Counted from the first letter of the stretch, positions 1 through 24,900 are shown. The stretch: DNA of 25,691 nucleotides from Macrostomum lignano (GCA_002269645.1 NIVC01005120.1:1-25691), one strand, 5' to 3'. Made by a program: numbers and translations. The notes: generated by a model not told the origin, from the letters alone.

Positions 1-402
1 TTGATAATTGAGCCAACCGGCGCTGGACAAACAAAACAGTTTGAGAAGGACGATCGAGAGAGGTGAGCGAGTTGGGGTGAAGCGTTTTAAATGAGCCGAC
101 TGACTCAGCATGCACAGCAAAATGCCCAGTGAGCACTAGAGCTCGACCCAGCCCGACCGAGCTATCCATAGGCCAGTGGGGTTGACCTGTCCAGCATCAC
201 GTGCTGTGTGGATATACACTGGCCACTCTTGAGCTCTGACCGAGCTGCTTAGCCAGTGCATTTCCATTACTCTTCGTTGTCGCTATATTAGCTCTGAGCA
301 ATTTTACAATGCTTCACCTCTCTGAGCACAAAGGCTAGTGGTCAATTGCTTCAAAACTTGCTTGTGTGCTACAACGCAGCAAGGTGCAGAAGCGGCTTCA
401 TC

Positions 403-1737
403 ATGCAGCTTCACTTACCGCCTATGCCAAGTAACTATTTTGATAAGCAGTTTCTGCCTACTCAAGGATACCACCTGGGCGACGATGTCAAACTAATCAG
501 CTGCGACATGAAGCCAGATATGGTTGAGCAAGTTGTCGGATCGGCCAGAGAGATTCTCAGTCGCAGAATTGTTAACGAACAGGTGAGGATTGAGGACGCG
601 AAATAAGTTAGCTTTAATATAGAGTGAATTAAGAATAAAAAAGATGTATTAGAAAGGATTCGAATTAAATCTTTTGGTGGTCCGATTAATTCTATGTGTA
701 GTGTTTTGTGTGTGGTGATTTTTATACAGCTACATGGCTACATGTGCATGTACAATTGTACACCTGTAAATCCATATTTTTCTATAGCGGGTCAATCTAA
801 ATGTAGCACAGATAGTTTTTTATTACTGCTATTACATGTCACTCAGCATGAGAGTGCTAAAAGATCAATAGCACTAATGTTGCCCCATGACTACAAAGAG
901 GATCAAAAGGGGAATGGAAGTGAAAGAGGACAAAGTTAGAAGATGAAAGGAGAACAAGACAAAGGAAAAGAGAAGCCAAAAAACTGATCAAGGTGATCTT
1001 TGAGATGCCTGGTTCTAGAAAACGGCTGGCTTGATACCAGGATTAGCTAGTGCTGCAGGTAGAGCATTCCATAATTTACTGTAATTGTAATAAATCACTG
1101 CTTCTGTTCTAGAAGAAGGAACTTGAAGGAGTAGCTTTGCTGTATGTTGTTATCTCCGTTCTGGAGACCATAGTATGACTTCATAGTGTGAGTTCAAATT
1201 TTCTCTTCTTGTCTGAATAGGCTTTGAACGGCAGGGTGTTAACTGTCGAAATGCTTGCGATAGTCCAGGGCGGGTTTACTGAGCATTCTGACAGCTCAAA
1301 CGGGCCTGGCTCTTGCGTCACCAGACAAGACGATTATAAAGTCAGGGCAGCTGTACACCCTGTGTGAGCGTGTGCATGAGTACAGCATCAGTGCGCTTGC
1401 ATGTGCTCAGGGGACAGCTGGTTGTGAGACGATGTCTCAAAAGGCGTCGGGACAGGGTGCCCGCAGACCGACAGATAATAATCGTTTTTTTCTGTCTGCG
1501 GAACTTTTCTAGAGTCTCAACAACTATTTCGTGCACCCAACTCAATTCAAGATTCTTCCTCGCGAGCTCAAGGAGGAGCTGGACGAGAAATTCGGCCACA
1601 ACTGGCAAGTGGTGGTCACTTCAGGCCAGTTCTGGGCCTGGTTCACCCACCTCGCTGGCTACTGCGTGGTGTTCAAGCTGCAGAGGTATTGCTTTCTGGT
1701 GTGGCGTACCAAGACTTGTTATTACAGAAAAAGTTGA
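403..1737 (+). CDS. Divergent dynein light chain LC8/type-1 family protein, join(403..582,1513..1737), 134 aa
   Basis: Exon 1 encodes VKLISCDMKPDMVEQVVGSAREIL (LC8 beta1/alpha1-like) and ends at CAG|GTGAGG (583, phase 0). Acceptor ttttctag|AGT at 1512/1513 follows a pyrimidine tract and joins in frame to ...ELKEELDEKFGHNWQVVVTSGQFWAWFTH...VFKLQRYCFLVWRT, matching the LC8 pattern KKEFDKKY.PTWHCIVG..FGSYVTH...F.L....LLFKS. The start could alternatively be ATG 424. Confidence 0.85.
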
Positions 1738-1772
1738 AAAATGAATGCAACAACTACCTCACTGTGCTATGC

Positions 1773-2116
1773 GGGGGCGTCGCCATGGAGTTTATGGTGG
1801 GGGGACAAAACCAACAACTCTACATGTACATGTACATAATTTTCAGAATCGGTGTTGTCAGCGCTCAATTGACGCCATAGGCACTCATTTAAGCGCCGCA
1901 GTCACTCATTTAAGCGCCGCAGGCACTCATTTAAGCGCCGAAGGCACTCATTTAAGCGCCGCAGGCACTATTTTCTGTCACCCTGAAACAAAATTATTGA
2001 TTTTAAAAACGGGTCATGAGGTTGGGGGGGAGGGGGACAAAGCATTGGCATGTCCCCAGCTTTTACTAGGGGGGGGGGACATGTCCCCCCTGTCCCCTCC
2101 CGGTGGCGACGCCCTG
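1773..2116. mobile_element. Non-autonomous DNA transposon (MITE; hAT- or MULE-like by TSD length)
   Basis: Perfect 11-bp TIR gggcgtcgcca (1775-1785) / tggcgacgccc (2104-2114). Flanking direct repeat tgctatgc at 1765-1772 and 2118-2125 (9 bp with one mismatch: gtgctatgc/atgctatgc). Internal 18-bp palindrome ggggggacatgtcccccc (2073-2090). Confidence 0.7.
1880..1969. repeat. 21-bp tandem repeat, ~4.3 copies, inside the MITE
   Basis: Unit ggcactcatttaagcgccgca at 1880, 1901, 1922, 1943 with single substitutions, plus a partial copy. Confidence 0.95.
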
Positions 2117-3397
2117 ATGCTATGCTTTTAATAATTTTTGCCTCGGTTATTTTTAAAATTTTATGTAAACTGAATATGCTCCTGTACAATGCTGCAGTTT
2201 GGCTAGCTTTTCTTGTTTTTGACCTTTGCACGATGTTCTAAGTACGCTCTTACTACTATTAGTATTGATATATTAAATTAAGTCGAAATAATTACGACAG
2301 TAGAAACTGTTTACCAGTCTTCATGACTTTCAGTTTTATATTTCTTTGCGTACATTTCGGAATTAAGAAACTGAAAAGTGCTGCATTAGAACGGTAGCTC
2401 CAAAGCTTTTCTTGCTAAGTTTTGTATGCCGGTGCCAAAAAAGTACTGTTGACAGGTATTTTGATGTTTATCAACATCTATAAACTGAGTTTTGGTTATC
2501 TTGTAACTTGAACTTCTGAAAAACACATTTTAATGCATATGATCGAATGCTAATTTTATTCAAAGCTCGTAAAAATCGTTCGTTATATATTTTTATTTCT
2601 GTATGGAGCCAAACATCATTTATTAAACAAATCACAGCACTGCAAACAAGGTTAGTCAGAATGATGTTTAAAATTTTGTGGACAGAATCTCGCTGGCTAC
2701 GGTGAATTCGAGTCAAAAAATTCCAGCAAATCGTCATCAGGAAAATGTAGCAAAAGTGGGAACAATGTTTTTGTCTTTCATTTTGTAAGAAATCTATATA
2801 GATTAACAAAATAAAAAGCTGTGAAAAGTACGTATACATTACGGTATGCTAGCCATAGCTACTGTCATATAATTTAAAAAACAGGAAGAAAAAGTGAATA
2901 GTGAAAGTGACACAGAAAAATGTTCAGCATTTAAAACACTACAAAAAGCTAAACTATTTTTAGTCGTGGCTACTAAAAACTACAGCAGATGGTGGAAATC
3001 GTTATATTATTTTTACCGTCTAAAGCTGAAACTAAAACTAAAACTAAAACTAACGGAATTTTTTTGTTAATTTTGTCGTCCTTTTTGATTTGCATGTAAA
3101 AGTAGCATCTAGCTAGTTGTAGATGATGTAGTGGAGCCCCTGTCTATCACAGGCTCATTTCTCTCATGAGAAATTTTACTTTGATTTATAGAAACGATGG
3201 CACTTCGGTATTTGCGTAGACCCTCATCCTTAATGATCAATTTAGTAAAAAATATCTTCATGATTTTAATTATTGGGGTATAGTTGTCACTAAAAGTTTT
3301 TGCAATAATAAAAATTGATAAGTTTTGATAAGATAACTTTCAAAAATCTTTTCTGGTGTAAAAAAGCAAGCGAATCTTTAGCGAATCAGAGCTATCT

Positions 3398-6300
3398 TTA
3401 AGATGATTCGACTTTTTCTAGGCCATCTGGGGCAGCTTCTGGTTCATTATCAAAGTCTCGCTTTCGATGGAAATTGGCCTTTCTATTCTTCTTTCGCTTG
3501 CTGAGAATCTCTTCCATTGACTCGATTTTGGTCTCCAGCCGTTGCAGATATTCAACCAGGTTTTGGCTCGCGGTGGCAGAAACATTTACTGCGTGCGACT
3601 TCAGTATCTCAGTATCGCTCTTGTTTCGCGTTATTTCGTTTAATAATTTCGGTCGAATTTCACGAAAAATAGCCGCTTGAAATTTTAAGAACTCCAGATA
3701 ATCTTCCGGGTATTGTGATTCCTGACTCCAGTAGCCCCTCTGCAACGAAGATTTGTTAATATAAACTAATGAGACAAGCAAGACAATAAAATATTCAATT
3801 TTACAAGTTTCGTGCTTATTCAATACAGTAGAGGAAAAAATCTAGTTTATTCCATTATAATCCGTCCTGTAGGTGGAGACAAGGGTCGTGACTGCCCTCT
3901 CAGCACAATGATCTACAGGATCTCCCAGAATTATGTGACAACCTTAGAAAAAGATCCTGACCGCACCTACTGGCTACATCTAGAACAAAATTCAAAATAT
4001 TCCGTGGGAGCCTTACCGGTTTATGTCCAACTTTTGATCTTCGAATATGCTGCTTCTTGCATCGGATTATTATTCTGATCGGATATTCCAGAAAAGAAAA
4101 TGGAGGCGGCAAAAAACTGATGTTCTTGTACTCCTGCAGCATTTCATAGTACGTCCTCCTCCAGATTCCCAAAGCCCTGCTGTGCTTTCTGATCACAGTG
4201 AGGTTGAACCGAGCTATCAACAGATTGAGCATGACAATATTAGACAGAGTCAAGAACACGAACATGAACAGGTTGTTAAACCAGCCGAAGCCGTCTGGAT
4301 GGGCAACTCGGCCCACATCCTGGCTTTCAGTACTACTGGTTGTTTCAAATCCGATCTTGTCAAAGTTTGTGAACAGCAGGTGAAAGGGCAGTGTCAATAT
4401 CTGCACGGTAGCATTCAACCTGTATTCCGTTGTGTTTGTTTTCGATGACAAAGCTGCGACGACTGGGAACAATAAATTGAAAAAAAACACCCCAAAAGAG
4501 TAGAAAATCACCAGCTGAATCAGTAAGAAAGGAACCAAATCCTTCAAGAGCAGGCTCTTAAGCATCGAGATGACCGGTCCAGTTTTTTGAAAACGATTGA
4601 GGAATGACACTGAACGAAATCCCCACAGCAGAAACGAGGTGGTCAGAATCATCTGGCAGACGTATTGTGTTTGTGGAGAAACAAACCATTGCGTTTCCAG
4701 CAGCTGTGCATTGTTGCGATTAAAAAAGCAAAAATCATTTTTTAAGTCACGGTTCGCGGGAAAGCACGTAAGCCAAAGTTTCAGTGATAAACCGGCCCAC
4801 ATGAAAAGAAGGGCCGACATGTCTAAATAATTCTGGACTTCCTTCAGGTACTTGTTGCAGTGACGGAATCCGCAAAGCGAGACTCGCCTATTTTGCCTGA
4901 GAAATTCATTAACTTCCTGCATTGTCAGCGAAGCAGCGTATGCAAGCATCACAACATCCGGCGACCAATACTGGAACGTTGTTCGAAAATCCACAATGTA
5001 CCAAGCAAAGTAAAGCATAAACACAATGAACCCCACTAGATGACACCAAAAGCGTTGATTCGGGGTATAGACCTTCCCTTTGCCTAATGTGCTACAACTT
5101 TCGGATGTCACTTTGTTGCTTTTTTTCAACCGATTGTGCCATTCCTCATAAACCAGATTGTGCACGCAGTCTGTTGCAAACAGATCATCGACAAAGGCCT
5201 CCTCGACCATTTCCATCACGGTGCGAACTTCAGTTTCCACTTTATCACTACCATCACTACTGAACTGTTTGACACAACAGCAGCTTTCCAATTTTTGCAC
5301 ACTGGCCGTAGACCGCCGACAAGGAAATCTCGGTCCCTGTTCTTCAGGCGGCGTGCCTTTGTCACAAAGCGTACCGCGCATGTAATTCATTAAAAGTTTT
5401 TTTTCTTTTCTATTTGCGCTATTGAAGAGTCCATCGAGTGCGTTTACAGCAATGTCAACCACTTTATTGTACAACTGTTGCAAGTCCTTGTTTTGGGAAG
5501 CTCCTCTAGCACCATAAAGGAGTGGCTTCAGAATGATCAGTACGCTCGTGCATGCAGGGATTAGTTCAAACTGCCTAGTAGCCAATAAATCAGGCAGAAT
5601 TTTTCGTGATATCTTTTTCTTTTTTGCGTCGTCAACATGGATTGCTGCATCTATGATTTCTAGCTCAGAGTATCCAGTTTTTGGTTCTCTTAATAAACCT
5701 TCGTACTCTTTATTGGTGAACTTCATTTGCTGCAAAAACTTTTTCTCTTCTTCATCATTAATCATGTTCAAGCAGAAGGCGCTACGTAGAATCATAGGGC
5801 TGTCCATTTCAAACGCCTGAATAAGAAGTGCCAATGACCGATCGACTCCATTGTCACGTTTCTCAATTATGCCTTCGCAAATCTGTCTTGCTGCCGATCT
5901 GTCCGGTAGAATCAGTCCCCTCTTCTTTGGATCAATCAGACTGTATTTTTCGGATACTTCTAGTCTTATCGGAAAAGTATCTAACTTTTGCTTAACTTGA
6001 TCCAAGCTATAATTTTCCATTGCGAAACCGATGCAGGTCCAGCCGCGATCAGTTTCGTGGGCTAGTTGCAAGCCTTTTTTTTTTAGGTACTTGATATTTG
6101 CTCTATGCTCAGCCCTGGAGGCAAAGTGCAAGCAGGTAGCGCCTTTGTGTATTCCACCAGTGACTGTGAGGCGCAGTAAGTCATGGGGTGACAATTGCGA
6201 CAATTTACCAAGCGGCTCCACCAATTCCTTCAGTTCCTGGCTGCTCGAGAACGCGTGTATAGCATGCACACCGTTTGAATTCGACAGAATTCGCGCAATA

Positions 6301-8921
6301 AATAGCATTTCCCCAGCTTCTTGCTCCTGTAGAATGCCTTTCAATACGGCTTTGATCGGAACACCCGAGTTGGCGGCACACAAAAAACTGAGGCCTGTTT
6401 TGTTCAACGCGTACTTGCTAACTTTTTTACCAATCAAGGCTTTAATAGCGTCAATGTAGTGTTGCCATTTACTTTCAGAAATCTGTCTGTTAGGCTGGAA
6501 CAGGGAATGAAGCAGGGTGTTCTCTTCAGAGTCTGTTTCCCTGAATAGTCTCATTATTTCGCTATTTTTCTTTGTGTCTTTTTTTATATTTAAATGTTCA
6601 ATAAGTGGTCTGACAGTTTTGGGATTTTTCACGGCTAGATGCAAAACCGACTGTCCTTCAAAGTTTTTCCAGCCAAGACATTTCGGTATTTCTCGTAACA
6701 GCCAGAAAAATACGTCTTCTTTTTCTTTGCAGTTGTCAGCAGCAATATGAGCGACTGAGTTTCCCCATGAGTCCCTGCGCGAAAGATTCTTCTCAAGATG
6801 CGTCTCTTTTACTTCAGTTAACACATTGATCATATATGTAGGATCGCAGTAACGTATGGAAATCTGGAATAACGAAATTCCAAAGTCGTTTTTCCAACTG
6901 AGGCAACCCAGTCCAAACGTTTGAATTATTGAATGAATTATTTTTGAATTTTCTTCCGGTGTTGCTTTGGACTTTTCTTCCGGTGTTGCTTTGGACTTTT
7001 CTTCCGAGTTTGCATTAGAACTCGATCGTTCTAGCTTCTTAATGCTCTCATATTCTTTGCTCAGAAGTTTCGAATAGAATCGATCAATCTTTTTCAGCCT
7101 CGCTAACAGAACTAGATTATTCCAATTAGAAGCAGCTACATCGAAAACTGTTTCTCCATGGTTATTTCGCCAACTGAGGCACCTGGGTCCTATTTCTGTT
7201 TGCGTTTCCCAGAATTTTAATGTTGCTTCGTGGCTGGGGTTTCTTGCCAAGCAGTGCATCACAGTGTCTCCGCGGATGTCTTTCCATTGCCAACTGTCAA
7301 TGCCGGCCTTTCCAGTGAGCTTCTGTACGGTAGCTAGACTGTAGTTCTCCGCTGCCACGTGGAGAATGGATTTCTTTTTATAGTTCTTAAGATCCAAGCT
7401 CAACAAGCTTGTGAAGATACTGGCGACATTCTGATTGTCTATTTTTTCCAACATCAATCTTTCCGCTTTAGGGTTTTGGGCCACGTAGTGCCAAATTGTG
7501 TTGCCTTCACTGTCCAGTTCCGCTTCAGCATTGCCATCTATGAATTGCTCAAACACATCATCGGGTTCGCAATTCGCTGCCAAGAGCTGCAGTACAGTTT
7601 GACCTGCCTGATTTTTCTTGTACAGATTCCAGTGTGAAACATCAGCTGATGTCAATTGTATCGCCTTATTTCTGGCCAAAAAGTGCATGATAGTATCACC
7701 GTGGGCATCCATCATGCCTAGGCCTGTCAACTCGGCATTGGTTTTGAGTTCATTAAACGTCTCTTTGCTGCAGTTCTCAGCTGCAACATGTAATACAGTT
7801 TGGTTAAAGTTGTTTACAGAAAGCAGATACCGCTTTTCACCGAATTGCTTTTTGTCCACAAGAAAGTATTTAGAGGCAACTTCGTTTCGAGCAATACAAT
7901 GCAAAACTGTATTGCCATTTTTGTCCTTCATAAGCGCCCTAGCAACTCGGGTACTCGGGTCATTCGACAATAGCGTGTTCAAAACCTCGAAGTCGCAGTT
8001 TTGTGCAGCAACGTGCAGTACTGTTTCTCCTAGAGAATTGCTTTCATTTATTAACACTGCGCCAATATGTTCTTCAAGCATCGTGAAAATATCTGGCGTT
8101 GCTTTCTTATTCTTTGCCAAGTAATGCCAGACTCTGTTAAGGCCAGAATCTTTCCAGCTAGCAAAATGATAGCCGGCTGCTTGTAGGAACTCTTGGACAG
8201 TCTCTGAATCATAATTTTGCGCCAAGATGTGCAAAACAATTTGATTTTCACGGTTAGGGATACCCAGCCAGTAATAGGCTGACTGTCCGTTAGAAATTGC
8301 AGCTCGAATAGCCTTTTTCATGCTTTCGTTTCTCGCAGCATAATGAAGAATGCTATCGCCTCTCGAGTCTGACCTTTTCAAAGAATTCAACTTTGTGTCG
8401 AGCAGCTGGCAGCAATAACGTAAGGGCTCCTCTGAGACATCTTTGTTTCTTGCAGCGCAGAGTAATACGGCATTACAGGCAACAATGTCTCTAATTTTAC
8501 CTGAGACCCGGTAAAGATTTTTTTCAAATTGTTTTTCAGTGTGACACCGAGCAGAAAGGTGCAATGGAGTGACTCCGTCTTCATCAGGAGTTAACAGGCA
8601 TTCGTAGCCAACTTTATCAACGATAAGATCGAGTGCTTTCTCCCCATCAGGGCAACCGGCGGCGTAGTGGACTGCGGTCCTATTGACGCTGTCAAGTCCA
8701 ATCAGATCTTCGATTTCAGATTCTTCGGTTGTGTTGCTTCGAATAAATTCAATCGCGTCAGTGAACTTCCGATCACGCGTCCGTTTTAGAAGTTCCGTTG
8801 GGCGTTGAAAATCTAGCGGACCCGCTGCGCCAAATCCACACGTGAACACTTGCTCAACCAGCTCCAAAACTGTTTCATCTTTGTCCATAGGCCTATTTTT
8901 TCCGTCAGATTGCTGAGCCAT
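3398..8921 (-). CDS. TRP-family cation channel with ~23 N-terminal ankyrin-like repeats and a TRPM-like transmembrane/TRP domain; complement(join(3398..3739,4017..8921)), ~1748 aa
   Basis: The 1673-aa ORF carries repeated D/N-xxG-x-T-V-L-H-x-A-A motifs, a pre-S1 motif (LFATDCVHNLVYEEW), six hydrophobic segments, S4-S5 linker GPVISMLKSLLLKDLVPFL, S6 NIVMLNLLIARF and TRP domain IWRRTYYEMLQEYKNISFLPPPF. Donor CCG|GTAAGG (4017/4016) and acceptor ttgcag|AGG (3740/3739) give a phase-0 277-bp intron that joins the 3398..3823 ORF, which has a C-terminal coiled coil (LVEYLQRLETKIESMEEIL). Confidence 0.9.
6949..7006 (-). repeat. In-frame 24-bp tandem duplication within the TRP exon (EEKSKATP x2 + EENSK)
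   Basis: ttttcttccggtgttgctttggac is repeated exactly at 6949-6972 and 6973-6996, then partially. Confidence 0.95.
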
Positions 8922-9075
8922 TTTTTGGTTCTGGAATCGGCCCGGATGACCCCTCGACGCTGGACTGTCTGGTAAAGTTGATTAAAAATTGCAGTATTCA
9001 AAATCACTAAAAACAAAAACAGACATGTAAGATAAGATATGAAGATGAGAACTGAGTTAAAATTGTAAAAAAAAC

Positions 9076-9438
<363 letters not shown>

Positions 9439-9668
9439 CTTCTCAAGAGCTTCTTTAAGAAAGGCCCTACTTTGCACATGAGCTGCGCAGCACACCAACT
9501 CTTATTCTTTGGCCTTCAAGCCTACATGTACTGAAGTGTAAAAACTCTGTAGGACTTCGCTCAGTCTTAAAGCAAATATAAAGTAAGTCGTTTGAAACAG
9601 TGTAACACAGCGGGAATGCTCTCTTCAGGCTTACAGCTAATTGTTTAGCTGTTACAGCTAACAGCTTA

Positions 9669-11405
9669 CACCAAGAGACAGGGGCGCCCACCAAGAGACA
9701 GGGGCGCCCACCAAGAGACAGGGGCGTCCACCAAGAGACAGGGGCGCCCACCAAGAGACAGGGGCTCGCACTTAAAGACAGAGGGTCCCACCAAGAGACG
9801 GGCGCCCACCAAGAGACAGGGGCGCCCACCGAGAAACAGAGGCGCCCACCAAGAGACAGGGGCGCCACCAAGAGACAGGGGCGCCCACCAAGAGACAGGG
9901 GCGCCCACCAAGAGACAGGGGCGTCCACCAAGAGACAGGGGCGCCCACCGCCCACTAAGAGACAGGGGCTCGCACTTAAAGACAGAGGGTCCCACCAAGA
10001 GACGGGCGCCCACCAAGAGACAGGGGCGCCCACCGAGAAACAGAGGCGCCCACCAAGAGACAGGGGCGCCACCAAGAGACAGGGGCGCCCACCAAGAGAC
10101 AGGGGCGCCCACCAAGAGACAGGGGCGCCCACCAAGAGACAGGGGCGCCCACCAAGAGACAGGGGCGCCCACCAAGAGACAGGGGCGCCCACCAAGAGAC
10201 AGGGGCGCCCACCGCCCACTAAGAGACAGGGGCTCGCACTTAGAGACAGAGGCTCCCACCAAGAGACGGGCGCCCACCAAGAGACGGGGGCGCCCACCGA
10301 GAAACAGAGGCGCCCACCAAGAGACAGGGGCGCCACCAAGAGACAGGGGCGCCCGCCAAGAGACAGTGGAAGCCACCAAAAGACAGGGGCGCCCACCGAG
10401 AGATAGAGGCGCCCACCAAAAGAAAGGGGCGCCCACCTAAGAGACAGGGGCGCCCACCAAGAGACAGGGGCGCCCACCAAAAGACAGGGGCACCCACCAA
10501 GAGACAGGGGCACCCACCAAAAGACAGGGGCACCCACCAAAAGACAGGGGCACCCACCAAGAGACAGGGGCACCCACCAAAAGACAGGGGAACCCACCAA
10601 AAGACAGGGGCGCCCATCAAGAGACATAGGCGCCCACCGCCCACAAAGACACAGGGGCGCCCACCGAGAGACAGAGGCGCCCAGCAAAAGACAGGGGCTC
10701 CCACTAAGATAGAGAGGCTCCCACCAAGAGACGGGCGCTCAACAAGAGACAGGGGCGCCCACCGAGAAACAGAGGCGCCCACCAAGAGACAGGGGCGCCC
10801 ACCAAGAGACAGGGGAACCCACCAAGAGACAGGGGCTCGCACTTAGAGACAGAGGCTCCCACCAAGAGACGGGCGCCCACCAAGAGACAGGGGCGTCCAC
10901 CAAGAGACAGGGGCGCCCACCGCCCACTAAGAGACAGGGGCTCGCACTTAGAGACAGAGGCTCCCACTGAGAGACAAGGGCGCCCACCAAAAGACAGGGG
11001 TCGCCCACAGCCGACCAAGAGACAGGGGCGCCAAACAAGAGACAGGTGCGCCTACCAAGAGGCAGGGGCGCCCACCAAGAGACAGGGGCGCCAACCAAAA
11101 GACAGGGGTGCCAAACAAGAGACAGGGGCGCCAAACAAGAGACAGGGGCGCCCACCAAGAGACAGGGGTGACCTCCAAGAGACAGGGGCGCCAACCAAAA
11201 GACAGGGGTGCCAAACAAGAGACAGGGGCGCCAAACAAGAGACAGGGGCGCCCACCAAGAGACAGGGGTGACCTCCAAGAGACAGGGGCGCCAACCAAAA
11301 GACAGGGGCGCCAAACAAGAGACAGGGGCGCCAAACAAGAGACAGGGGCGCCCAGCAAGAGACAGGGGTGACCTCCAAGAGACAGGGGCGACCACCAAGA
11401 GACAG
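9669..11405. repeat. GC-rich ~20-bp minisatellite (consensus ccaccaagagacaggggcgc), ~85-90 units, with higher-order structure
   Basis: Continuous tandem units with variants and no unique spacers. The marker variant ggggctcgcactta recurs at 9761, 9965, 10229, 10832 and 10937. A 5x20 = 100-bp higher-order unit repeats three times at 11081-11380. Confidence 0.97.
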
Positions 11406-11701
11406 CGATCGATCATTAAAAAAAGTATTGTAGTGCTTAAGCGGAGACTTAAGTCTACAGAGTACAGTAGAGCATGTCCAACCATAACACTTTTGTTTGA
11501 GATTAAGTAGATAATCAAGGAGCAATACATCAATACATAAAAAATCAAGGAGCTGGGCACTTACCTAGTCCCGTTCACTCTTTGCAGCTCAGTAACCAGG
11601 AGTTATTTTGTTGTCTAAGCCTTGGACTTTGTCCGAGAAATCCTGCCTTGCCGCTACGACTCCGAGAAAACTGCTGTATATTTATCTGCATCAAAGGATA
11701 G

Positions 11702-11857
11702 TCAGGTCTCACCGATGCAACCAAATATGGCAATGGCGGTCCGCAGTAAAACGGTCTCAAGTCCATCTTTGGTGATGGATGAGCACAAAAGCTTGGCTTC
11801 TTGAAGTCCAATTATGGAAATTTGTCTCCGACGGAGTGTTTTCAGTCTAGAATATTT
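11702..11857 (-). mobile_element. Possible decayed non-LTR retrotransposon AP-endonuclease fragment
   Basis: A minus-strand frame not in the ORF track reads KTLRRRQISIIGLQEAKL, resembling the first APE motif (L.R..IDI..LQET.). It stops within ~30 codons and there is no other LINE evidence. Confidence 0.25.
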
Positions 11858-13569
11858 CTATGTACAATGAGAAGAATGGAATTCTATTTTAAAAACTGAA
11901 ACTCAGACTTAGACTTAGGCCAGCTGCCTGTAAGCAACAACACTTATCTTAGACTTAGGTGAGAAAATGAACTAGCCTTATTTTTTTCAATGACAGTGTA
12001 CTGAACCTGTGCACCTTTTTACTGTCATAAATTGTAAACTAGAAAACAGACTCGAGAAGTACTTCTAAGTAGATATACTGAGTAGGCATATTTGTCCTGT
12101 GAATTCCAAAAACTTATCTGTATTAATCTTAGCAACAGATTGACCATTAAGAAGGAAACTAATGAAAAAAACTGTCAATACTCTCATCGGTTTAGCAACT
12201 CGATGAGAGGCAGCCTAGCTGATAACTAAAATATTATTTATAGTGTAATATTTTGAATTTTTCATCATTATCATGTTGATAGTTTATCGTAATTTTCATG
12301 TAACAATGAATTAAATTCTATCAACGCCGAGTGCTTTTTGAGTTCGCATTGATTGATCGACTTTTGTCTATGGTCGAAAACGACGAGCCCGAGCTTTCGT
12401 AGAAATTTACACCCCCACGTAATGGGTTGGTCGGCCGTTTAATTTGGCTCTTTTTTTTCAGTGGAACTCCAAGTCTATGGTAATAGTTGGGACTTTTGCT
12501 GGGCGTCGTAAGAAGACACGATGGCTAAACCGACTATATGATGCTGTTGAAGCAATCGTCGGAGTTCGAGTAAGAAGTAGAATCGAATTTTTATCAAGCC
12601 CCAGTGAAAAAGAAAGTTCTTAGGATACCTTTCTTAGGCCGAGCTTGAGAATAGCGTTCATGGACTCTCGACCATAGGCGCCGATGTGACACTTATTAGT
12701 TACTCTATATACCTATAGAAAGTAAGCTAAAAACACAACCATTTGAATTTGTAAACACTTATCGCCGATTAGAACTAATCGAGAGTTTTAAAGATCAGAT
12801 CGTTAAACTCTGTAGTCTAAAAATAGCTGCAAATGAAAACCGAAACTGCGCAATGAAAATGTACTCAAACAGCTGTGTACAGTCTGTTTGGTAGCGAACG
12901 CAGAATAGTTTTATTTTTAGCTTCGAAGAAAAGAGAGGTAGAACTCAAGAACTCAACTCAAGTGAACTTAAATTCGACAGGACAGCCATAATGGCACTCA
13001 CAACTATGATCATTACGCATATATCCATAGTTTTAAAATCTTATATAATGCATGCTGTCAACTATACTTGATTTGACGAACAAAATAAGTAATTTATTTT
13101 GCCTTCCTGTATAATAATTTTACGGTTTTCTGTTGCATAGTTAAGAACTTGAATTCCGATTTGAAGGCCGATGAGCAGTGCTCGGCAGAAAGGAGCCAAA
13201 GAGCCTTGGCTGTAATAGTAGTAGTACGAGTAAAGGCTCAATCACACTGCAATCAAATGAAAGACCAAGTCACACGACTAGTTTGACTACACAGCATTTC
13301 CTCATTTTTCTGTGATCACTTGAAATCTCAGCTAACATAGAAAATTTTCAAATTCAGCGACAAAAGTTAATAACGCGAGGGCCAGTTGATTAACTAAAAC
13401 GCTGTAAATTGGTCGCTTGCCTCTTACACAGCACTCGAAGTTGCGCAACACACAAAACTCAACTCAAGCCACTCTATTTCAACAACTCTCCGTCTAGTTT
13501 GACTGTCGCTTCACAATTGATTGGTCATCACACCAGTCAGGTTATTAACTATTTTATTTTCACATGAGC

Positions 13570-13680
13570 CAGGGGTCGGCAAACTCCGGCCGGCAGGGCA
13601 CATGCGGCTTGCAAAGCCTCTCTGTCCAACCTTAGCGGTCCTTTGAAGCTCCACAATAGCAATCCGGCCCTTAATGTTGG
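13570..13680 (+). mobile_element. Truncated hAT-type MITE, left end only
   Basis: Begins caggggtcggcaaactccggccggcagggcacatgcggc, the pattern of hAT (Charlie/SPIN-like) MITE termini CAGGGGTCGGCAAAC...CGGCCC...GGGCC.CATGCGGC. No matching right TIR was found in the window. Confidence 0.5.
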
Positions 13681-13863
13681 TCTCTTCTCAGTTCTCTTCT
13701 CTCTTCTCCTCTCTCCTCTCTCCTTCCTCCTCTCCCTCTCTCTCCTCTTTTCTACTCTCCTAACCTAATTTTCATCTCGTCTCCTCTTTGCTCCATTTCC
13801 TCGCCTCTCCCTTCTCCTATCTCCCTTCTTTCTTTTTTATTCCCTCTCATCTTCTCCTTCCTC
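13681..13863. repeat. CT-rich low-complexity pyrimidine tract
   Basis: Directly visible; imperfect (CT)n/(CTT)n/(CCT)n mixture. Confidence 0.9.
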
Positions 13864-14101
13864 CGGACCGCAGTTATGCTCTATAGGATCTCTATCTAGC
13901 CCTTGAGATAAAAATCCGAACCCTGACATAATAGGAAAAAGAACCATCAGGAAAGTGTAATATGCTTGCTAGGTTGTTCGTTAGCTCGCGCCAGTTATAT
14001 CAATAAGAGCGCTGGCCTTTGTACTCTGATACAGACTGTACACTGGTACAATGTACAAAATAGCTTTCTCAAACTTGCTCAAAATATATATGTACAATTT
14101 A

Positions 14102-14201
14102 GGCTCGACTGAGGTCATTGTCAAAGATTCGTTATTCATCAACTCAAATTTAGTGTGATCACTCGAAAATTGGCCTCATTTGATGGCGGTGTGAACGAGC
14201 C
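14102..14201. mobile_element. Possible PIF/Harbinger-type MITE remnant
   Basis: TTA direct repeats (14099-14101, 14202-14204) flank a 6-bp TIR ggctcg/cgagcc. The right end gtgtgaacgagcc is Harbinger-like; the left TIR matches for only 6 bp. Confidence 0.35.
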
Positions 14202-14419
14202 TTAATGGTTGTGCTACTCCCGACTCGGGGTGTGCTAGATAAGTTTCTAGAAGTTCCCAGAATACGTTAGTACAATATTAGTAAACTCTATGATTAAATA
14301 TGTTATTGAGGTCAGCCAGGTTTGGAACTATATTTAGTTTGGCTGGAATGAAGATTTGGATTTAATTTTCATATTCGTAGAATTTGAATTCGCGCGCTCT
14401 AATCATAAATACTACTCAA

Positions 14420-14717
14420 GGACTACTTAAGTAGAACGGATGGGAAACTACGTTGCCTAAAAAAATAAGAATTTGAGCAAAAATGCGTAACAGAAAGATA
14501 AAATCGATTAATAAAAACATTGAGTTGAGTCGTTGCCGTTTTCTAAGATTTTAGACATATGACGCGTACGTAGGATAAAAAATTAACGGAATTCTAATTT
14601 TATAAACGAAAAGCTTTGTGAAAACCTACTATATCTCCTTAATGCATTTTTCTGTAAAATCTGCCTTCAAAAACTTCCCAAGAAGCGTAGTTTCCTGTCC
14701 TTCTACTTGACTAGTCC
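14420..14717. mobile_element. Kolobok-like non-autonomous DNA transposon (MITE), 298 bp
   Basis: Left TIR ggactacttaagtagaacggatgggaaactacg (14420-14452) vs reverse complement of right end ggactagtcaagtagaaggacaggaaactacg (14686-14717): 28/33 identical. Flanked by TCAA (14416-14419) and TTAA (14718-14721). A TTAA TSD with RR-starting TIRs is the Kolobok pattern. Confidence 0.7.
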
Positions 14718-15434: not shown

Positions 15435-18569
<3,135 letters not shown>

Positions 18570-20769: not shown

Positions 20770-21017
20770 CGTAGTTAGCTAAATTATAGTTGATAACTGC
20801 GATAGTTAGCTAAATTATAGTTGATAACTGCGATAGTTTGCTAAATTATAGTTGATAACTGCGATAGTTAGCTAAATTATAGTTGATAACTGCGATAGTT
20901 AGCTAAATTATAGTTGATAACTGCGATAGTTAGCTAAATTATAGTTGATAACTGCGATAGTTAGCTAAATTATAGTTGATAACTGCGATAGTTTGCTAAA
21001 TTATAGTTGATAACTGC
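20770..21017. repeat. 31-bp AT-rich minisatellite, 8 copies
   Basis: Unit gatagttagctaaattatagttgataactgc at 20801, 20832 ... 20987, plus a slightly variant first copy. Confidence 0.97.
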
Positions 21018-21527
21018 GAGCGTAGAAATCAGCGCCCCCGTTGGGGAGCTAACAAAGAATGGAATACAAATTTTTGAATAAATTACATGTAGCTTCTCCT
21101 TGCAATAACCTCTGAAATTCCCCTTGTAAGTGGCTACGGGCTTCGGGGTTGGATTTAATGGCTGTGAATAACGAGACAATCACAAGTCCCAAATGACGCT
21201 TTTGTTGTTGAACTGCCCTAAAAATCTGCTCCTCCCTACTCAACTGCCAGGAATTTTCTTTTCCTCCCTTTGAGTTCCCACTTTTCCCAGCTCTTTTGCA
21301 CTCCTGATCACCATCCCTTCACTAAAGTCGTACATATTAGATCGCGAGTTTGCAACTCCAAAATCCATCGGCTTGACAGCTTTTTGCGGGTTACAATTGA
21401 TTTTCAAATTTTTACCCGCGATATTTTGTTACATTAAAATTTTTTTAGGGCTAACGCTTCTCGAGATTTATGGACTTGGAGGTGTGCCTGGTTGCTAGCG
21501 AGCTGTCTGAAGGCTGATTCTCGGGGC

Positions 21528-21788
21528 GTGCCATCTATAGGGGTGCCATCTATAGGGGGTGCCATCTATAGGGGGTGCCATCTATAGGGGTGCCATCTAT
21601 AGGGGTGCCATCTATAGGGGGTGCCATCTATAGGGGTGCCATCTATAGGGGTGCCATCTATAGGGGTGCCATCTATAGGGGGTGCCATCTATAGGGGTGC
21701 CATCTATAGGAGTGCCATCTATAGGGGTGCCATCTATAGGGGGTGCCATCTATAGGGGTGCCATCTATAGGGGGTGCCATCTAGGGGG
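21528..21788. repeat. 16/17-bp minisatellite gtgccatctatagggg(g), ~17 copies
   Basis: Directly visible; units differ by G4 vs G5 run length. Confidence 0.97.
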
Positions 21789-21905: not shown

Positions 21906-24900
21906 ATGAAGCATGACCAAAAACCATACTGGAACTTTCAGTTACAAAAGCTCTGCAGGCTCGTCATCCGCGGTGACTACCCTCTGCTACGTCAGCAGGC
22001 TACAGAGCAGCTGGTAGCTGCGGCTGATGGGGCAGGTAGGACTGTCCTCATGCTGGTGGCTGGCACTCGTTCGACAATCGTACAGTCTGAAAAGTGCATA
22101 CGGTACTTAATCCAGCTGGGCGCGGATCCCATGGCAGCTGATCAAACTGGAAACACGGCTGCTCACCTTGCGGCCCAGCGGGACCATCTGCGGCTGCTGG
22201 AGCTGCTGCCGTTCAATGCGAAGTGGCTGTCGAACCAGCAGGGCGCCACTCCGCTGATGGAGGCGTCGCGGACCGGCAGCTGGAGATGCGCCAAGCACCT
22301 GTTGCACCTGTTGCGGCAGAAGGCCTGGAACAACAGTAGGAGGTTTGGAAACGAAACAAGAGAAGAGCTGCTTGGTCAGACAGATGCCGACGGGCAAACA
22401 GCGTTGGATCTTGCTCGGCGCAGTGGCTACAAAGATATGGCTGCGGAAATTGAGCTGTGAGTTCTTGCTAACTCTGACTCTGAAACGTTATTTACCGTAA
22501 TTTACAGGTTTCTCCACAGCAAAGTAGGCAGGCATATTCCGGATCTGTTTAGTTACAAATAAAATTAAATTTAAAACTATTTTTAGAGAGCTGCGACTAT
22601 CGGTGGATAGATCGGGGTTTATTCACGGCCTCACAGAATCCGTAAGTTTGCACATTTTTCTGTGGTGTTGCACTCAGATGGATTTGCCTATGATCCGTCA
22701 CGTTTTTACTCCAAAAAGTTTTTTACCCTCAGCTTGGCTCCTCTCTCAACTACGTTCTTTATAACTTGAATGATGATTCATGGTCTCAAAATTGGCACTT
22801 TTGGCTCGGCTCCTGCAAAGTCCCCTGGAGTCTGAGAGGTCTCCCAGTAGAGTAGCTAGTTTGTGGGTCTGGATGTCAGAGCCATCCCGGTCTCGTCCAG
22901 TGAGAAAACTTGACGATTTAACTAGTTTCGCCGAGACTTAAGTCATCATCCCCCTTCGTCATCAAGTTAGCGATGAAGCCTGAGATCATTTGAGATCAGC
23001 ACAGCATGTTGGTTCTGCATGTAGTGTAGTTTTACATATGTAGTTCCGCATATTTTCCGCTAAATCATACATATTATTTGCTAAGTCGGGGCATTTCAGG
23101 CCAAGACCGTACATATGCATGTACATTATGGTTATTCGATAATGTATTTATATGTTCAGCAGTGTATAAAGGTTCAATTCAAGTTACCTCCTACAAAAGT
23201 TCTCTCTGTCCCTGTATGGTCAATGCAATGTAGTCCCAGCAGTGTCCCTTGATATCAAATATAATTTGGGGATGGACAGCAAAAAGTTTACAGGTAAGTC
23301 CAGTGCCCCATCTAGTCGTATATCTGATTGTAAAGGAAAAGCTGATTTCGTGAGTTACATGTAGTTGGAACGGATTTGGTGCACGGTGGGTTAGTTCAAT
23401 CTCAGGGTAAGTAACAGCATACAATGGTAGCTTCTAGTATTCCCTGGCTTGTCTCTCGCTGCCTGCTCCTAGCTCATAAATGGCAAGTCTTTTGTATGCT
23501 TTTAGAATTTGTAAAATTCTTGCAAAAATATTTAGGAAGAGGCGATCAGAGCTGAACTGGAGCAGCTGGCAAGATCCGGTGACGCGATGGAGCTGCGACG
23601 AGTTGTGACTCGAAGCAACTGCGACCTGCCTGACGCCCGCGGCTTCACCCTGCCAATGTGGGCAGCTGCCAACAAGGAACTGAATGATCCGGAATTGTGG
23701 GCTCGCCTGCTGCAACTGGCTGATGCCACCTGCGCAGCGGTGTCAGGAGAGAGCTGTCTGCATCGGGCAGCTGGCAGCGGTAGCCCCATCGCAGCTAATG
23801 CGCTAATGGATGCTGGAGCGTCATCAAACAGCACAGCCCAGTTCGGACTCACACCCTTGATGGTGGCGGCCAGTGCGGAGAGACTCAGCAATGCTGACGC
23901 GGTGGGCTGGGTTCTGCTGTCTGCCGGATCTGACTGGACGGCCATCGAACGAAAGGGCAGGACTGCCTTGAACTTGGCTACTAAGAATCCGTATAGATCT
24001 GACGGATTAGTTGAGCTGCTGAGTGGGTAAGCTGCCAATTTACTCATTTGAAAACGTAATCTAAAAAATGAAAGCCGCTAGAAGTTACGGTTGTATCGAT
24101 GCACATTTTTCGGAAGTCCACGTTTGCTCAAAATTGCATGAACAGTGTTGGCCGGGTCATAGCATTTATCTCGACGGAATCAAGATTCAAATCTGATGGT
24201 GGTTCCGTTGATGCAGAGTATTACAGGTCACAACTCTTGCAACATGAAGGGGTGGCGCATACCAGTACAGTAACTCGACTTCGGCAATGTTGCATTTTGG
24301 CCGACGTTTTCGAAGTCCATCTACGACGCTAGCAAATAAAAAATTTACATTGCGTCGACATTTGACCGACATATTTCAGGATGTACGCCCCACTTTTCAG
24401 CAGAGTTAGTCAAAATAATCTGGTGTAAGGATTCTCTGGCCATAATCTCCGATGAATTCGTTCAAGAAGTCTGCCATAAAGTTAAGGGATGCAACCAAAT
24501 ACCCAAAACACCAAATGCATTTATCAGTATGCTTATACGAAATCTATTGAACCTTAGCACGATATTTAATAATATATGATGCACATGCATAATCTCCATG
24601 CAATGCAGATACGATGGAAAGGGTTACTTCGACGAGCCGATTGAACCACCGTGAGTTAACCTTTGTAATTTTGTTACAAAACGATACAACATTGCATTAC
24701 TTACAACACTGCATAGAGGCCTTCAAATAAATATTATAAATATAAAAGATGAAACTCATAGTTTTCTCGTGTCACATGTGCATGTCACTTGTTCTGCCAC
24801 ATAGTTGGTCACTAAAAACGTCGTCCGTACGGGTCATGACACCTGGCGTGAAAATAACAAACAAAACTGTATTTTATTGACAAACATTTCAGCAAACCCT

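Follow-up and report, generated by a model that had tools for sequence, protein, structure and literature searches.

The stretch of Macrostomum lignano DNA analysed here (GCA_002269645.1, NIVC01005120.1:1-25691; 25,691 nucleotides, referred to as the window) carries on its minus strand, at 3398-8921, a genuine and intact two-exon gene that unites a long array of ankyrin repeats and a TRPM-type pore in one protein. Very probably the gene product is a single subunit of a tetrameric cation channel that is TRPM-like and non-selective, belonging to a flatworm group in which ankyrins stand in place of the SLOG domain (the ANK-type sequences below) and, within that group, to a separate clade that is expanded in Macrostomum and in which the ankyrins have increased from about 5 to about 20-23. 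A first-pass annotation, made from the sequence alone, had described a TRPM-like channel core behind an ankyrin array of TRPN scale and had put it forward as a candidate novel channel class. The description has held, but the proposal of novelty has not: essentially this kind of protein was described in 2023-2026 as TRPM_MCLZ (Smp_333650), so the layout is not a new channel class and the picture of classes within the TRP superfamily is unchanged. What appear to be new are the distinct long-ankyrin clade, its expansion to about 17 M. lignano lineages and the correct full-length gene models.

The gene and its homeolog

The open reading frame (ORF) listing for the minus strand gives a single frame of 1673 codons (8921..3900). 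When exon 1 is joined to exon 2 (8921..4017 and 3739..3398; Table 1), translation yields a protein of 1748 aa with one stop, the terminal one, and the extent originally annotated, 3398-8921, proves to be exactly that of the coding sequence, the intron having gone unmentioned. The acceptor was read from the sequence as a polypyrimidine tract and CAG ending at 3740; exon 2 can be aligned with the C-termini of the paralogues P0001, P0003 and P0043, and the junction HKP|RGYW recurs unchanged in P0041 and P0042, public M. lignano models that are respectively 94% (phmmer) and 96% identical to the channel protein. These two models, of this locus or of its homeolog, are fragmentary: P0041 (782 aa) starts at Met968 and has no ankyrins, and P0042 (877 aa) is mis-spliced, with pieces missing. 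As the ORF is continuous, the true product of the locus is about 1750 aa long. Two full-length paralogues, P0001 (1801 aa) and P0003 (1761 aa), have the same architecture and intron position.

Another contig of the same assembly, L001, is syntenic with window 1-14484 and 91-98% identical to it and, to judge from its sequence, is a homeologous or allelic copy. Its exon 1, too, is a single open frame, of 1728 codons if the read-through into the intron is counted. The alignment of the two genes covers 1625 codons and gives a synonymous divergence (dS) of 0.116 and a ratio of nonsynonymous to synonymous divergence (dN/dS) of 0.38 (ankyrins 0.36, linker 0.44, transmembrane (TM) domain 0.32), and the internal indels, 10 out of 10, are multiples of three. 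After residue 785 the homeolog carries an in-frame insertion of 47 aa, and it has one additional 8-aa unit in the EEKSKATP tandem repeat. Purifying selection is indicated across the whole fused protein by this comparison, and the dN/dS values together with the in-frame indels speak against a read-through across two genes, and against a pseudogene.

Anatomy of the protein

Ankyrin families are the only ones that Pfam detects in the channel protein (Ank_2, E 8e-33, seven stretches). With a repeat hidden Markov model (HMM) that we built from the units of this protein, 19 units were located over residues 77-984, and four further, degenerate units were recognized by eye at about 678, 796, 839 and 880, which bears out the ~23 motifs first annotated at 6013-8693 (residues 77-970). 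The units alternate between a 'GDT..H..ARN' type and a 'Q-TVLHVAAENC' type, and match repeats of NOMPC and ankyrin-1/2 in the PDB. In the AlphaFold2 (AF2) model used here (residues 660-1748, 38-sequence alignment, mean pLDDT 81.7, pTM 0.73; an earlier run on residues 801-1748, with 6 aligned sequences, was set aside at pLDDT 55), the paired ankyrin helices extend as far as residue ~980; beyond them come a helical linker (about 1008-1182), two short strands and the helices of pre-S1. The linker carries the family-invariant RQFELIP (residues 1116-1122, window 5556-5576) and also DLFATDC.

The six TM segments annotated at about 4090-5060 are recovered in the model as helices, accompanied by a pore helix, and S6 is continuous with the TRP helix in one long helix (1542-1600). 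The sequence motifs quoted for the pre-S1 region (DLFATDCVHNLVYEEW), for S6 (NIVMLNLLIARF, which is conserved) and for the TRP domain (IWRRTYYEMLQEYKNISFLPPPF, with the pattern IWRRTYY...LPPPF) are all present, as is the terminal coiled coil: beyond a rib helix of 20 residues, the model has a terminal helix of 56 (1677-1732) with the 3-4-3-4 hydrophobic spacing of heptads. R1436 in S4 and W1587 and Y1592 in the TRP domain are conserved, W1587 being invariant in the family. The residues equivalent to the selectivity filter are F1517-T1518-N1519, in a pore loop FTNFD. E1336 and E1339 in S2 (where TRPMs have E-x-x-Q) and N1364 and D1367 in S3 lie where we take the Ca2+ site of TRPM2/4/5/8 to be; E1336 and N1364 do not vary across the family.

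A TRPM-type channel core

The channel core is of TRPM type, to the exclusion of TRPA, TRPN and TRPC. When the single sequence was compared with the PDB by phmmer, every significant match in the TM region was to a TRPM, the best being Nematostella TRPM2 (1e-12), followed by TRPM1/2/3/4/5/7, and no TRPA1, TRPC or TRPV chain appeared at E<0.01. A profile of five family members matched residues 795-1204 of zebrafish TRPM2 at E 6e-29, over a stretch spanning the pre-S1, the TRP domain and the rib helix and reaching into the coiled coil; the TM domain of NOMPC matched the same profile at E 8.4e-9, and the best stretch listed for TRPA1 chains was always ankyrin (profile positions 72-413 or 127-347). 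Membership of TRPN was rejected on the difference between these two E-values and on the TRPM-like C-terminus, and membership of TRPA on the lack of a TRPA1 match at E<0.01 for the single sequence and on the location of the best listed profile stretches in the ankyrins.

A Foldseek search with the AF2 model returned dozens of TRPM structures (TRPM2/3/4/5/8) at E ~1e-12 and probability 1.00. NOMPC headed the list by E-value, because its ankyrins and its TM domain both align; the TM-scores (0.31-0.38), which do not separate NOMPC from TRPM globally, are low because the arrangement of domains in the monomer dominates them. TRPA channels have 14-17 ankyrins ahead of the TM domain, and TRPN channels about 29. 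The likeness to TRPN/NOMPC is thus one of scale (29 ankyrins there, about 23 here), whereas NOMPC has no C-terminal coiled coil of the kind predicted here, and in the channel the TRP domain is of TRPM type and the predicted rib helix and coiled coil resemble those of TRPMs.

With canonical TRPMs, defined for this purpose by the Pfam domains LSDAT_euk, PF25508 and Ion_trans, with or without TRPM_tetra (TRPM2/3/4/5/7/8), the channel has its best sequence and fold matches, from pre-S1 to coiled coil, and shares the S6 'LNLLIA.F', the TRP domain and the Ca2+-site positions of S2/S3. It differs from them in its long ankyrin array, in the replacement of the Gly-Glu/Gln of the filter, in an MHR3/4 region that is not directly detectable and in the absence of SLOG/MHR1-2: Pfam gave no LSDAT_euk (PF18139) match at E<=1, and a SLOG HMM derived from five canonical hits, by which 21 other proteins were detected, did not match the channel protein. 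A long array replacing SLOG/MHR1-2 on a TRPM-type core is, as the first-pass annotation held, a combination outside the textbook definition of any canonical subfamily. At the extreme C-terminus, full-length hhalign aligned residues 1700-1748 with the part of P0119 that hits TRPM_tetra, with a confidence of 6.4, and the C-terminus alone gave no significant match to a TRPM profile (hhalign probability 1.3%).

Relationship to TRPM_MCLZ of parasitic flatworms

The Schistosoma mansoni protein Smp_333650, or TRPM_MCLZ, is the target of meclonazepam; encoded by three exons, it has multiple ankyrin-like repeats at its N-terminus, and had earlier been classed as TRPM7-like (Park et al., PMC10788528). 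It has no NH2-terminal MHR1/2 or SLOG, ankyrin-like modules taking their place (Sprague et al., PMC11731825). Rohr et al. (PMC12861061) assign it to a clade adjoining the TRPMs, for which they proposed the label 'TRPM-like', and count 63 orthologues from trematodes, monogeneans and cestodes; they report one gene in each parasite, with exon 3 duplicated in some species, and full conservation of H831 among the orthologues. The remark in the first-pass annotation that A/M-type hybrids had been mentioned for flatworms was a correct lead to these papers. Neither in the three of them nor in further literature searches did we find any mention of relatives in free-living flatworms.

TRPM_MCLZ orthologues among the sequences collected here were identified through the published residue numbers: P0241 is a Schistosoma TRPM_MCLZ, with H827, H831, Y864, E868, R943, H946, Y1038 and Y1117 all as published, and Y944 of S. 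mekongi and F952 of E. granulosus agree likewise (PMC12861061). When ten full-length members of the window family were compared by hhalign with five MCLZ-type proteins (four neodermatan TRPM_MCLZ orthologues and P0086), the profiles matched at E 1.4e-44, co-linearly from the ankyrins to the C-terminus, with confident blocks in the membrane-proximal ankyrins, in residues 1100-1250 (against 587-691 of P0085, the MHR4-like stretch) and throughout the channel. The linker alone (residues ~1111-1262) matched the MCLZ-type profile with a probability of 92% (E 6.6e-7), and did so on the very stretch which in MCLZ-type proteins hits PF25508 or our own MHR3-4 HMM. The last ankyrins alone matched the same profile in register (probability 96%); against canonical TRPMs, hhalign gave them no significant match. 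BLASTP against P0241 aligned the TM domain (E 5e-13, about 23% identical) and gave a second co-linear high-scoring segment pair in the linker (TRPM_MCLZ 564-643), around RQF[ED]xxP, at E 0.002.

The two kinds of protein have in common the replacement of SLOG/MHR1-2 by ankyrins, an MHR4-like linker with RQF[ED]xxP, a TRPM-type S1-S6, a TRP helix with W....Y and LPPPF, a helical C-terminus and very few introns (three exons there, two here); the S1 His, S2 Glu, S4 Arg and TRP Tyr of the pocket in the VSLD, the domain that resembles a voltage sensor, are conserved, and both kinds are restricted to flatworms as far as seen. They differ in the number of ankyrins (about 5 against about 20-23) and in length (about 1380 against 1748 aa), and the window protein has no Pfam PF25508 match, has its FTNFD pore loop and falls in a clade apart, with multiple copies in M. 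lignano. The tree described below supports its status as a homologue or paralogue of TRPM_MCLZ; orthology is not claimed.

Relatives and phylogeny

Cluster representatives numbering 1.84 billion were scanned exhaustively with HMMER, residues 851-1635 serving as the query, which gave 33 clusters at E<1e-30 and a sharp fall afterwards. The named members of this top tier are all from M. lignano (Mlig016442, 022947, 016225, 010193, 034326, 021601, 018559, 028468, 023275, 015722 and others), with two exceptions, the contig L002 and an Opisthorchis model of inflated score, both considered below. The long-ankyrin clade comprises about 17 lineages, nearly all of them from M. lignano, that are <90% identical in the TM domain and are all annotated as "hypothetical". 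The next tier consists of flatworm proteins of ~1100-1400 aa with about 5 ankyrins, some from M. lignano and others from Schistocephalus, Dicrocoelium and Fasciolopsis (these latter auto-named 'TRPM7'), and is followed by canonical TRPMs. Named members of all three ANK-type clades are flatworms throughout.

The short-ankyrin paralogues of M. lignano (for example Mlig030565, Mlig019746, Mlig012389 and Mlig033956; about 1100-1400 aa) resemble the window channel in having ankyrins and then a TRPM-type core, which in several of them also matches Ion_trans in Pfam. Unlike it, they have about 5 ankyrins and retain a V/Y-G-E filter. The C-terminal half of PF25508 (MHR3/4) was found in both of those scanned with Pfam (P0081 and P0102, which also have Ion_trans), and most of the others match the MHR3-4 HMM.

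A neighbour-joining tree was built from 292 columns of the S1-TRP region, unrooted and without TRPA/C/N/V outgroups, after six rogue fragments had been removed. The window family forms a long-branched clade of its own, outside the neodermatan clade (bootstrap 100%); the short-ankyrin M. lignano sequences form another (100%), and the MCLZ-type sequences (neodermatan orthologues with P0086 and P0093) a third (94%). The last two group together at 68%, which places the short-ankyrin paralogues nearer to the parasite clade, and the window family groups with MCLZ alone at only 28%. All ANK-type sequences are separated at 70% from the rest, including every SLOG-type TRPM detected. From this, a single flatworm origin of the ankyrin-for-SLOG architecture may be proposed, the window family having split off deeply as a branch of its own and expanded its array about fourfold; this reading is provisional, as the tree is distance-based and unrooted.

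The model P0070 from Opisthorchis (1e-33) was considered as the closest relative outside Macrostomum and rejected, as two TM modules inflate its score. In Opisthorchis viverrini, P0070 and P0199 are TRPM_MCLZ gene models with two tandem TRPM-like TM modules (684-985 and 1343-1690 in P0070), a structure consistent with the reported duplicated trematode exons 3a/3b, which are probably mutually exclusive. L002 (GCA_036350755.1, JAZBNS010000602.1, 42-4966) is a 5.1-kb contig of a metagenome-assembled genome labelled 'Kangiellaceae bacterium', encoding a 1537-aa member of the long-ankyrin clade, with a GT..AG intron at the position of that in the window gene and then an exon for the rib helix and coiled coil. 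It is a eukaryotic contamination of a bacterial bin, probably from a flatworm, and the only sign of the long-ankyrin clade outside M. lignano. A further sequence, P0103 (GCA_003604175.2, a 124-kb gene), is a SLOG-type TRPM with LSDAT_euk, PF25508, Ion_trans and a weak NUDT9_N, and with a weak N-terminal Ank_2 (E 1e-7, residues 63-119); such an arrangement, with ankyrins ahead of SLOG, could represent an intermediate architecture if it is real.

Alternative explanations

Several observations weigh against the placing of the channel in a TRPM-like group with ankyrins for SLOG. Pfam finds no Ion_trans, PF25508 (MHR3/4) or TRPM_tetra (PF16519) in the channel protein, and direct comparison of the linker with canonical TRPMs by hhalign is not significant, so that the putative MHR4 homology is transitive only, by way of MCLZ-type sequences. 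With the TM domain alone, phmmer E-values for ANK-type relatives (1e-20 to 1e-22) are little better than those for SLOG-type TRPMs (1e-17 to 1e-18), and the deep nodes of the tree, which in a first version were below 70% (partly through rogue fragments), are at 70% or less in the final one. In the pore, F-T-N replaces the F/Y-G-E/Q of TRPMs, the conserved Gly having gone both here and in P0001 (most paralogues retain it in the alignment); because this position is divergent, the permeation properties of such a pore, and even conduction through it, are uncertain. Only four of the seven meclonazepam-pocket positions are conserved (H1294, E1336, R1436 and Y1592, which correspond to H827, E868, R943 and Y1117), the differences being F1298 (for H831), L1332 (for Y864) and S1439 (for H/Y/F946), and because of this sensitivity to meclonazepam would not be expected, and a shared pharmacology should not be assumed.

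A more radical interpretation would make the family a new TRP subfamily, an ancient ankyrin-bearing lineage predating the loss of ankyrins in TRPM/TRPS and related to TRPM_MCLZ merely as one TRP channel to another. Its long-branched clade with 100% support, its lack of any TRPM-specific Pfam domain and the ankyrin-bearing pre-TRPM ancestor inferred by Himmel et al. (PMC7306681) would all suit such a history. It is nonetheless improbable: the specific, co-linear matches of linker and C-terminus to TRPM_MCLZ-type channels point to common descent, the 70% split unites all the ANK-type clades, and as the named ANK-type members are all from flatworms, a flatworm innovation fits better than an ancient relic. 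Convergence, in which an ankyrin-repeat gene was fused to a SLOG-less TRPM and the long array was gained independently of TRPM_MCLZ, seems if anything slightly less probable still. Similarity between ankyrins is generic, the array is four times the length of that in TRPM_MCLZ, and the TM tree places the family within neither short-ankyrin clade; against these stand the non-ankyrin linker with RQF[ED]xxP, which is common to both proteins and lies in an equal position between ankyrins and pre-S1, the alignment of the last ankyrins in register, and the greater simplicity of an internal expansion of repeats, from about 5 to about 23.

That the gene is no single gene at all, adjacent ankyrin and channel genes having been read as one frame, or that it is a decaying copy, is hardly credible. 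The public models are indeed split or truncated (P0041 and P0042), but the frame is uninterrupted for 1635 codons, the homeolog keeps it at a dS of 0.12 with in-frame indels only and a dN/dS of 0.38, and the architecture and intron position are shared with the full-length paralogues P0001 and P0003 and with the metagenomic contig L002.

Possible mode of action and wider significance

By analogy with TRPM structures, four subunits of the TRPM-like channel would assemble with the C-terminal coiled coil as a central pole, and with the ankyrin and linker layers as a cytoplasmic skirt. The gating signal would be carried from the voltage-sensor-like S1-S4 domain to a gate in S6 by way of the S4-S5 linker and the TRP helix. 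Intracellular Ca2+ is a likely co-activator, because the acidic cluster of S2/S3 occupies the Ca2+-site positions of TRPM2/4/5/8, and the S1-S4 cavity, which in relatives binds menthol, praziquantel or meclonazepam, is likely to be a ligand site. Paralogues so numerous and divergent suggest that the sensory repertoire has diversified, whereas the mechano- or chemosensory role put forward in the first-pass annotation is speculative. It is conceivable, though unlikely, that the long-ankyrin clade is a flatworm reinvention of a NOMPC-like tethered mechanosensor, in which a TRPM-type pore is gated by way of a 'spring' of ~23 repeats, and each of ~17 paralogues answers to a mechanical or other physical stimulus of its own; the scale of the array, the resemblance to NOMPC in Foldseek and the expansion of paralogues are the basis of this idea, on which the evidence is otherwise neutral.

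TRPM_MCLZ is a validated anthelmintic target, and the ankyrin-for-SLOG architecture has so far been discussed for parasites only. The free-living M. lignano has both short- and long-ankyrin relatives, and is a tractable species, amenable to RNA interference, for studying the role of ANK-type TRPM-like channels. Its set of sequences, with corrected gene models, also provides an outgroup series for reconstructing the replacement of SLOG by ankyrins.

Features of the channel gene and its surroundings

Table 1. Features of the channel gene and its product (window coordinates, with strand, and residue numbers)
Feature	Position	Residues	Details and evidence
Coding exon 1	4017..8921 (-)	1-1635	ATG at 8921; 1635 codons; ...VGHKP, then GTAAGG donor; ORF list, sequence, translation
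Intron (spliceosomal, the only one)	3740..4016 (-)		277 nt; GT..AG; phase 0; just after TRP domain
Coding exon 2	3398..3739 (-)	1636-1748	Stop codon 3400..3398
Ankyrin-repeat array	5967..8693 (-)	77-985	About 19-23 units; Pfam, repeat HMM, AF2
24-bp tandem repeat, in frame	6942..7006 (-)	~639-660	Low-complexity EEKSKATP loop EEKSKATPEEKSKATPEENSK between ankyrin units; Tandem Repeats Finder (TRF)
Helical linker domain and pre-S1	5136..5966 (-)	986-1262	~1111-1262 MHR4-like
TM domain	4206..5063 (-)	1287-1572	AF2, PDB matches to TRPM2/3/4/5/7, alignment
S1		1287-1310	AF2
S2		1320-1343	AF2
S3		1362-1386	AF2
S4		1416-1443	AF2
S5		~1455-1484	After S4-S5 linker; AF2
Pore helix		1498-1516	AF2
S6		~1547-1572	AF2
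TRP helix and second TRP box	4086..4199 (-)	1575-1612	...IWRRTYYEMLQEYKNISFLPPPFSFLEY
Rib helix and coiled-coil 'pole' helix	3449..3706 (-)	1647-1666 (YPEDYLEFLKFQAAIFREIRP) and 1677-1732	AF2; 988-1007 and 1018-1073 in model numbering

Immediately 5' of the start codon of the channel gene lies a (GA)n tract of ~330 bp (window 9089-9416), and farther 5' a GC-rich minisatellite of 1.7 kb (9669-11405), comprising ~86 copies of the 20-bp unit CACCAAGAGACAGGGGCGCC. The copy number of the latter is strongly different in the homeolog, where the minisatellite occupies only about 380 bp (3602-3983).

A second minus-strand gene, at 15435-18169, has ankyrin exons (17672-18169 and 16936-17520) and a kinase exon (15435-15980; Pkinase, E 2e-36), and an ankyrin gene on the plus strand, at 21906-24030, is clearly paralogous to it and is arranged head-to-head with it. 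Between these ankyrin-kinase-type genes are tandem arrays at 18196-18527, 20772-21019 and 21528-21783, made up of a (TTAC)83 microsatellite and two near-perfect arrays (31 bp x 8 and 15 bp x 17).

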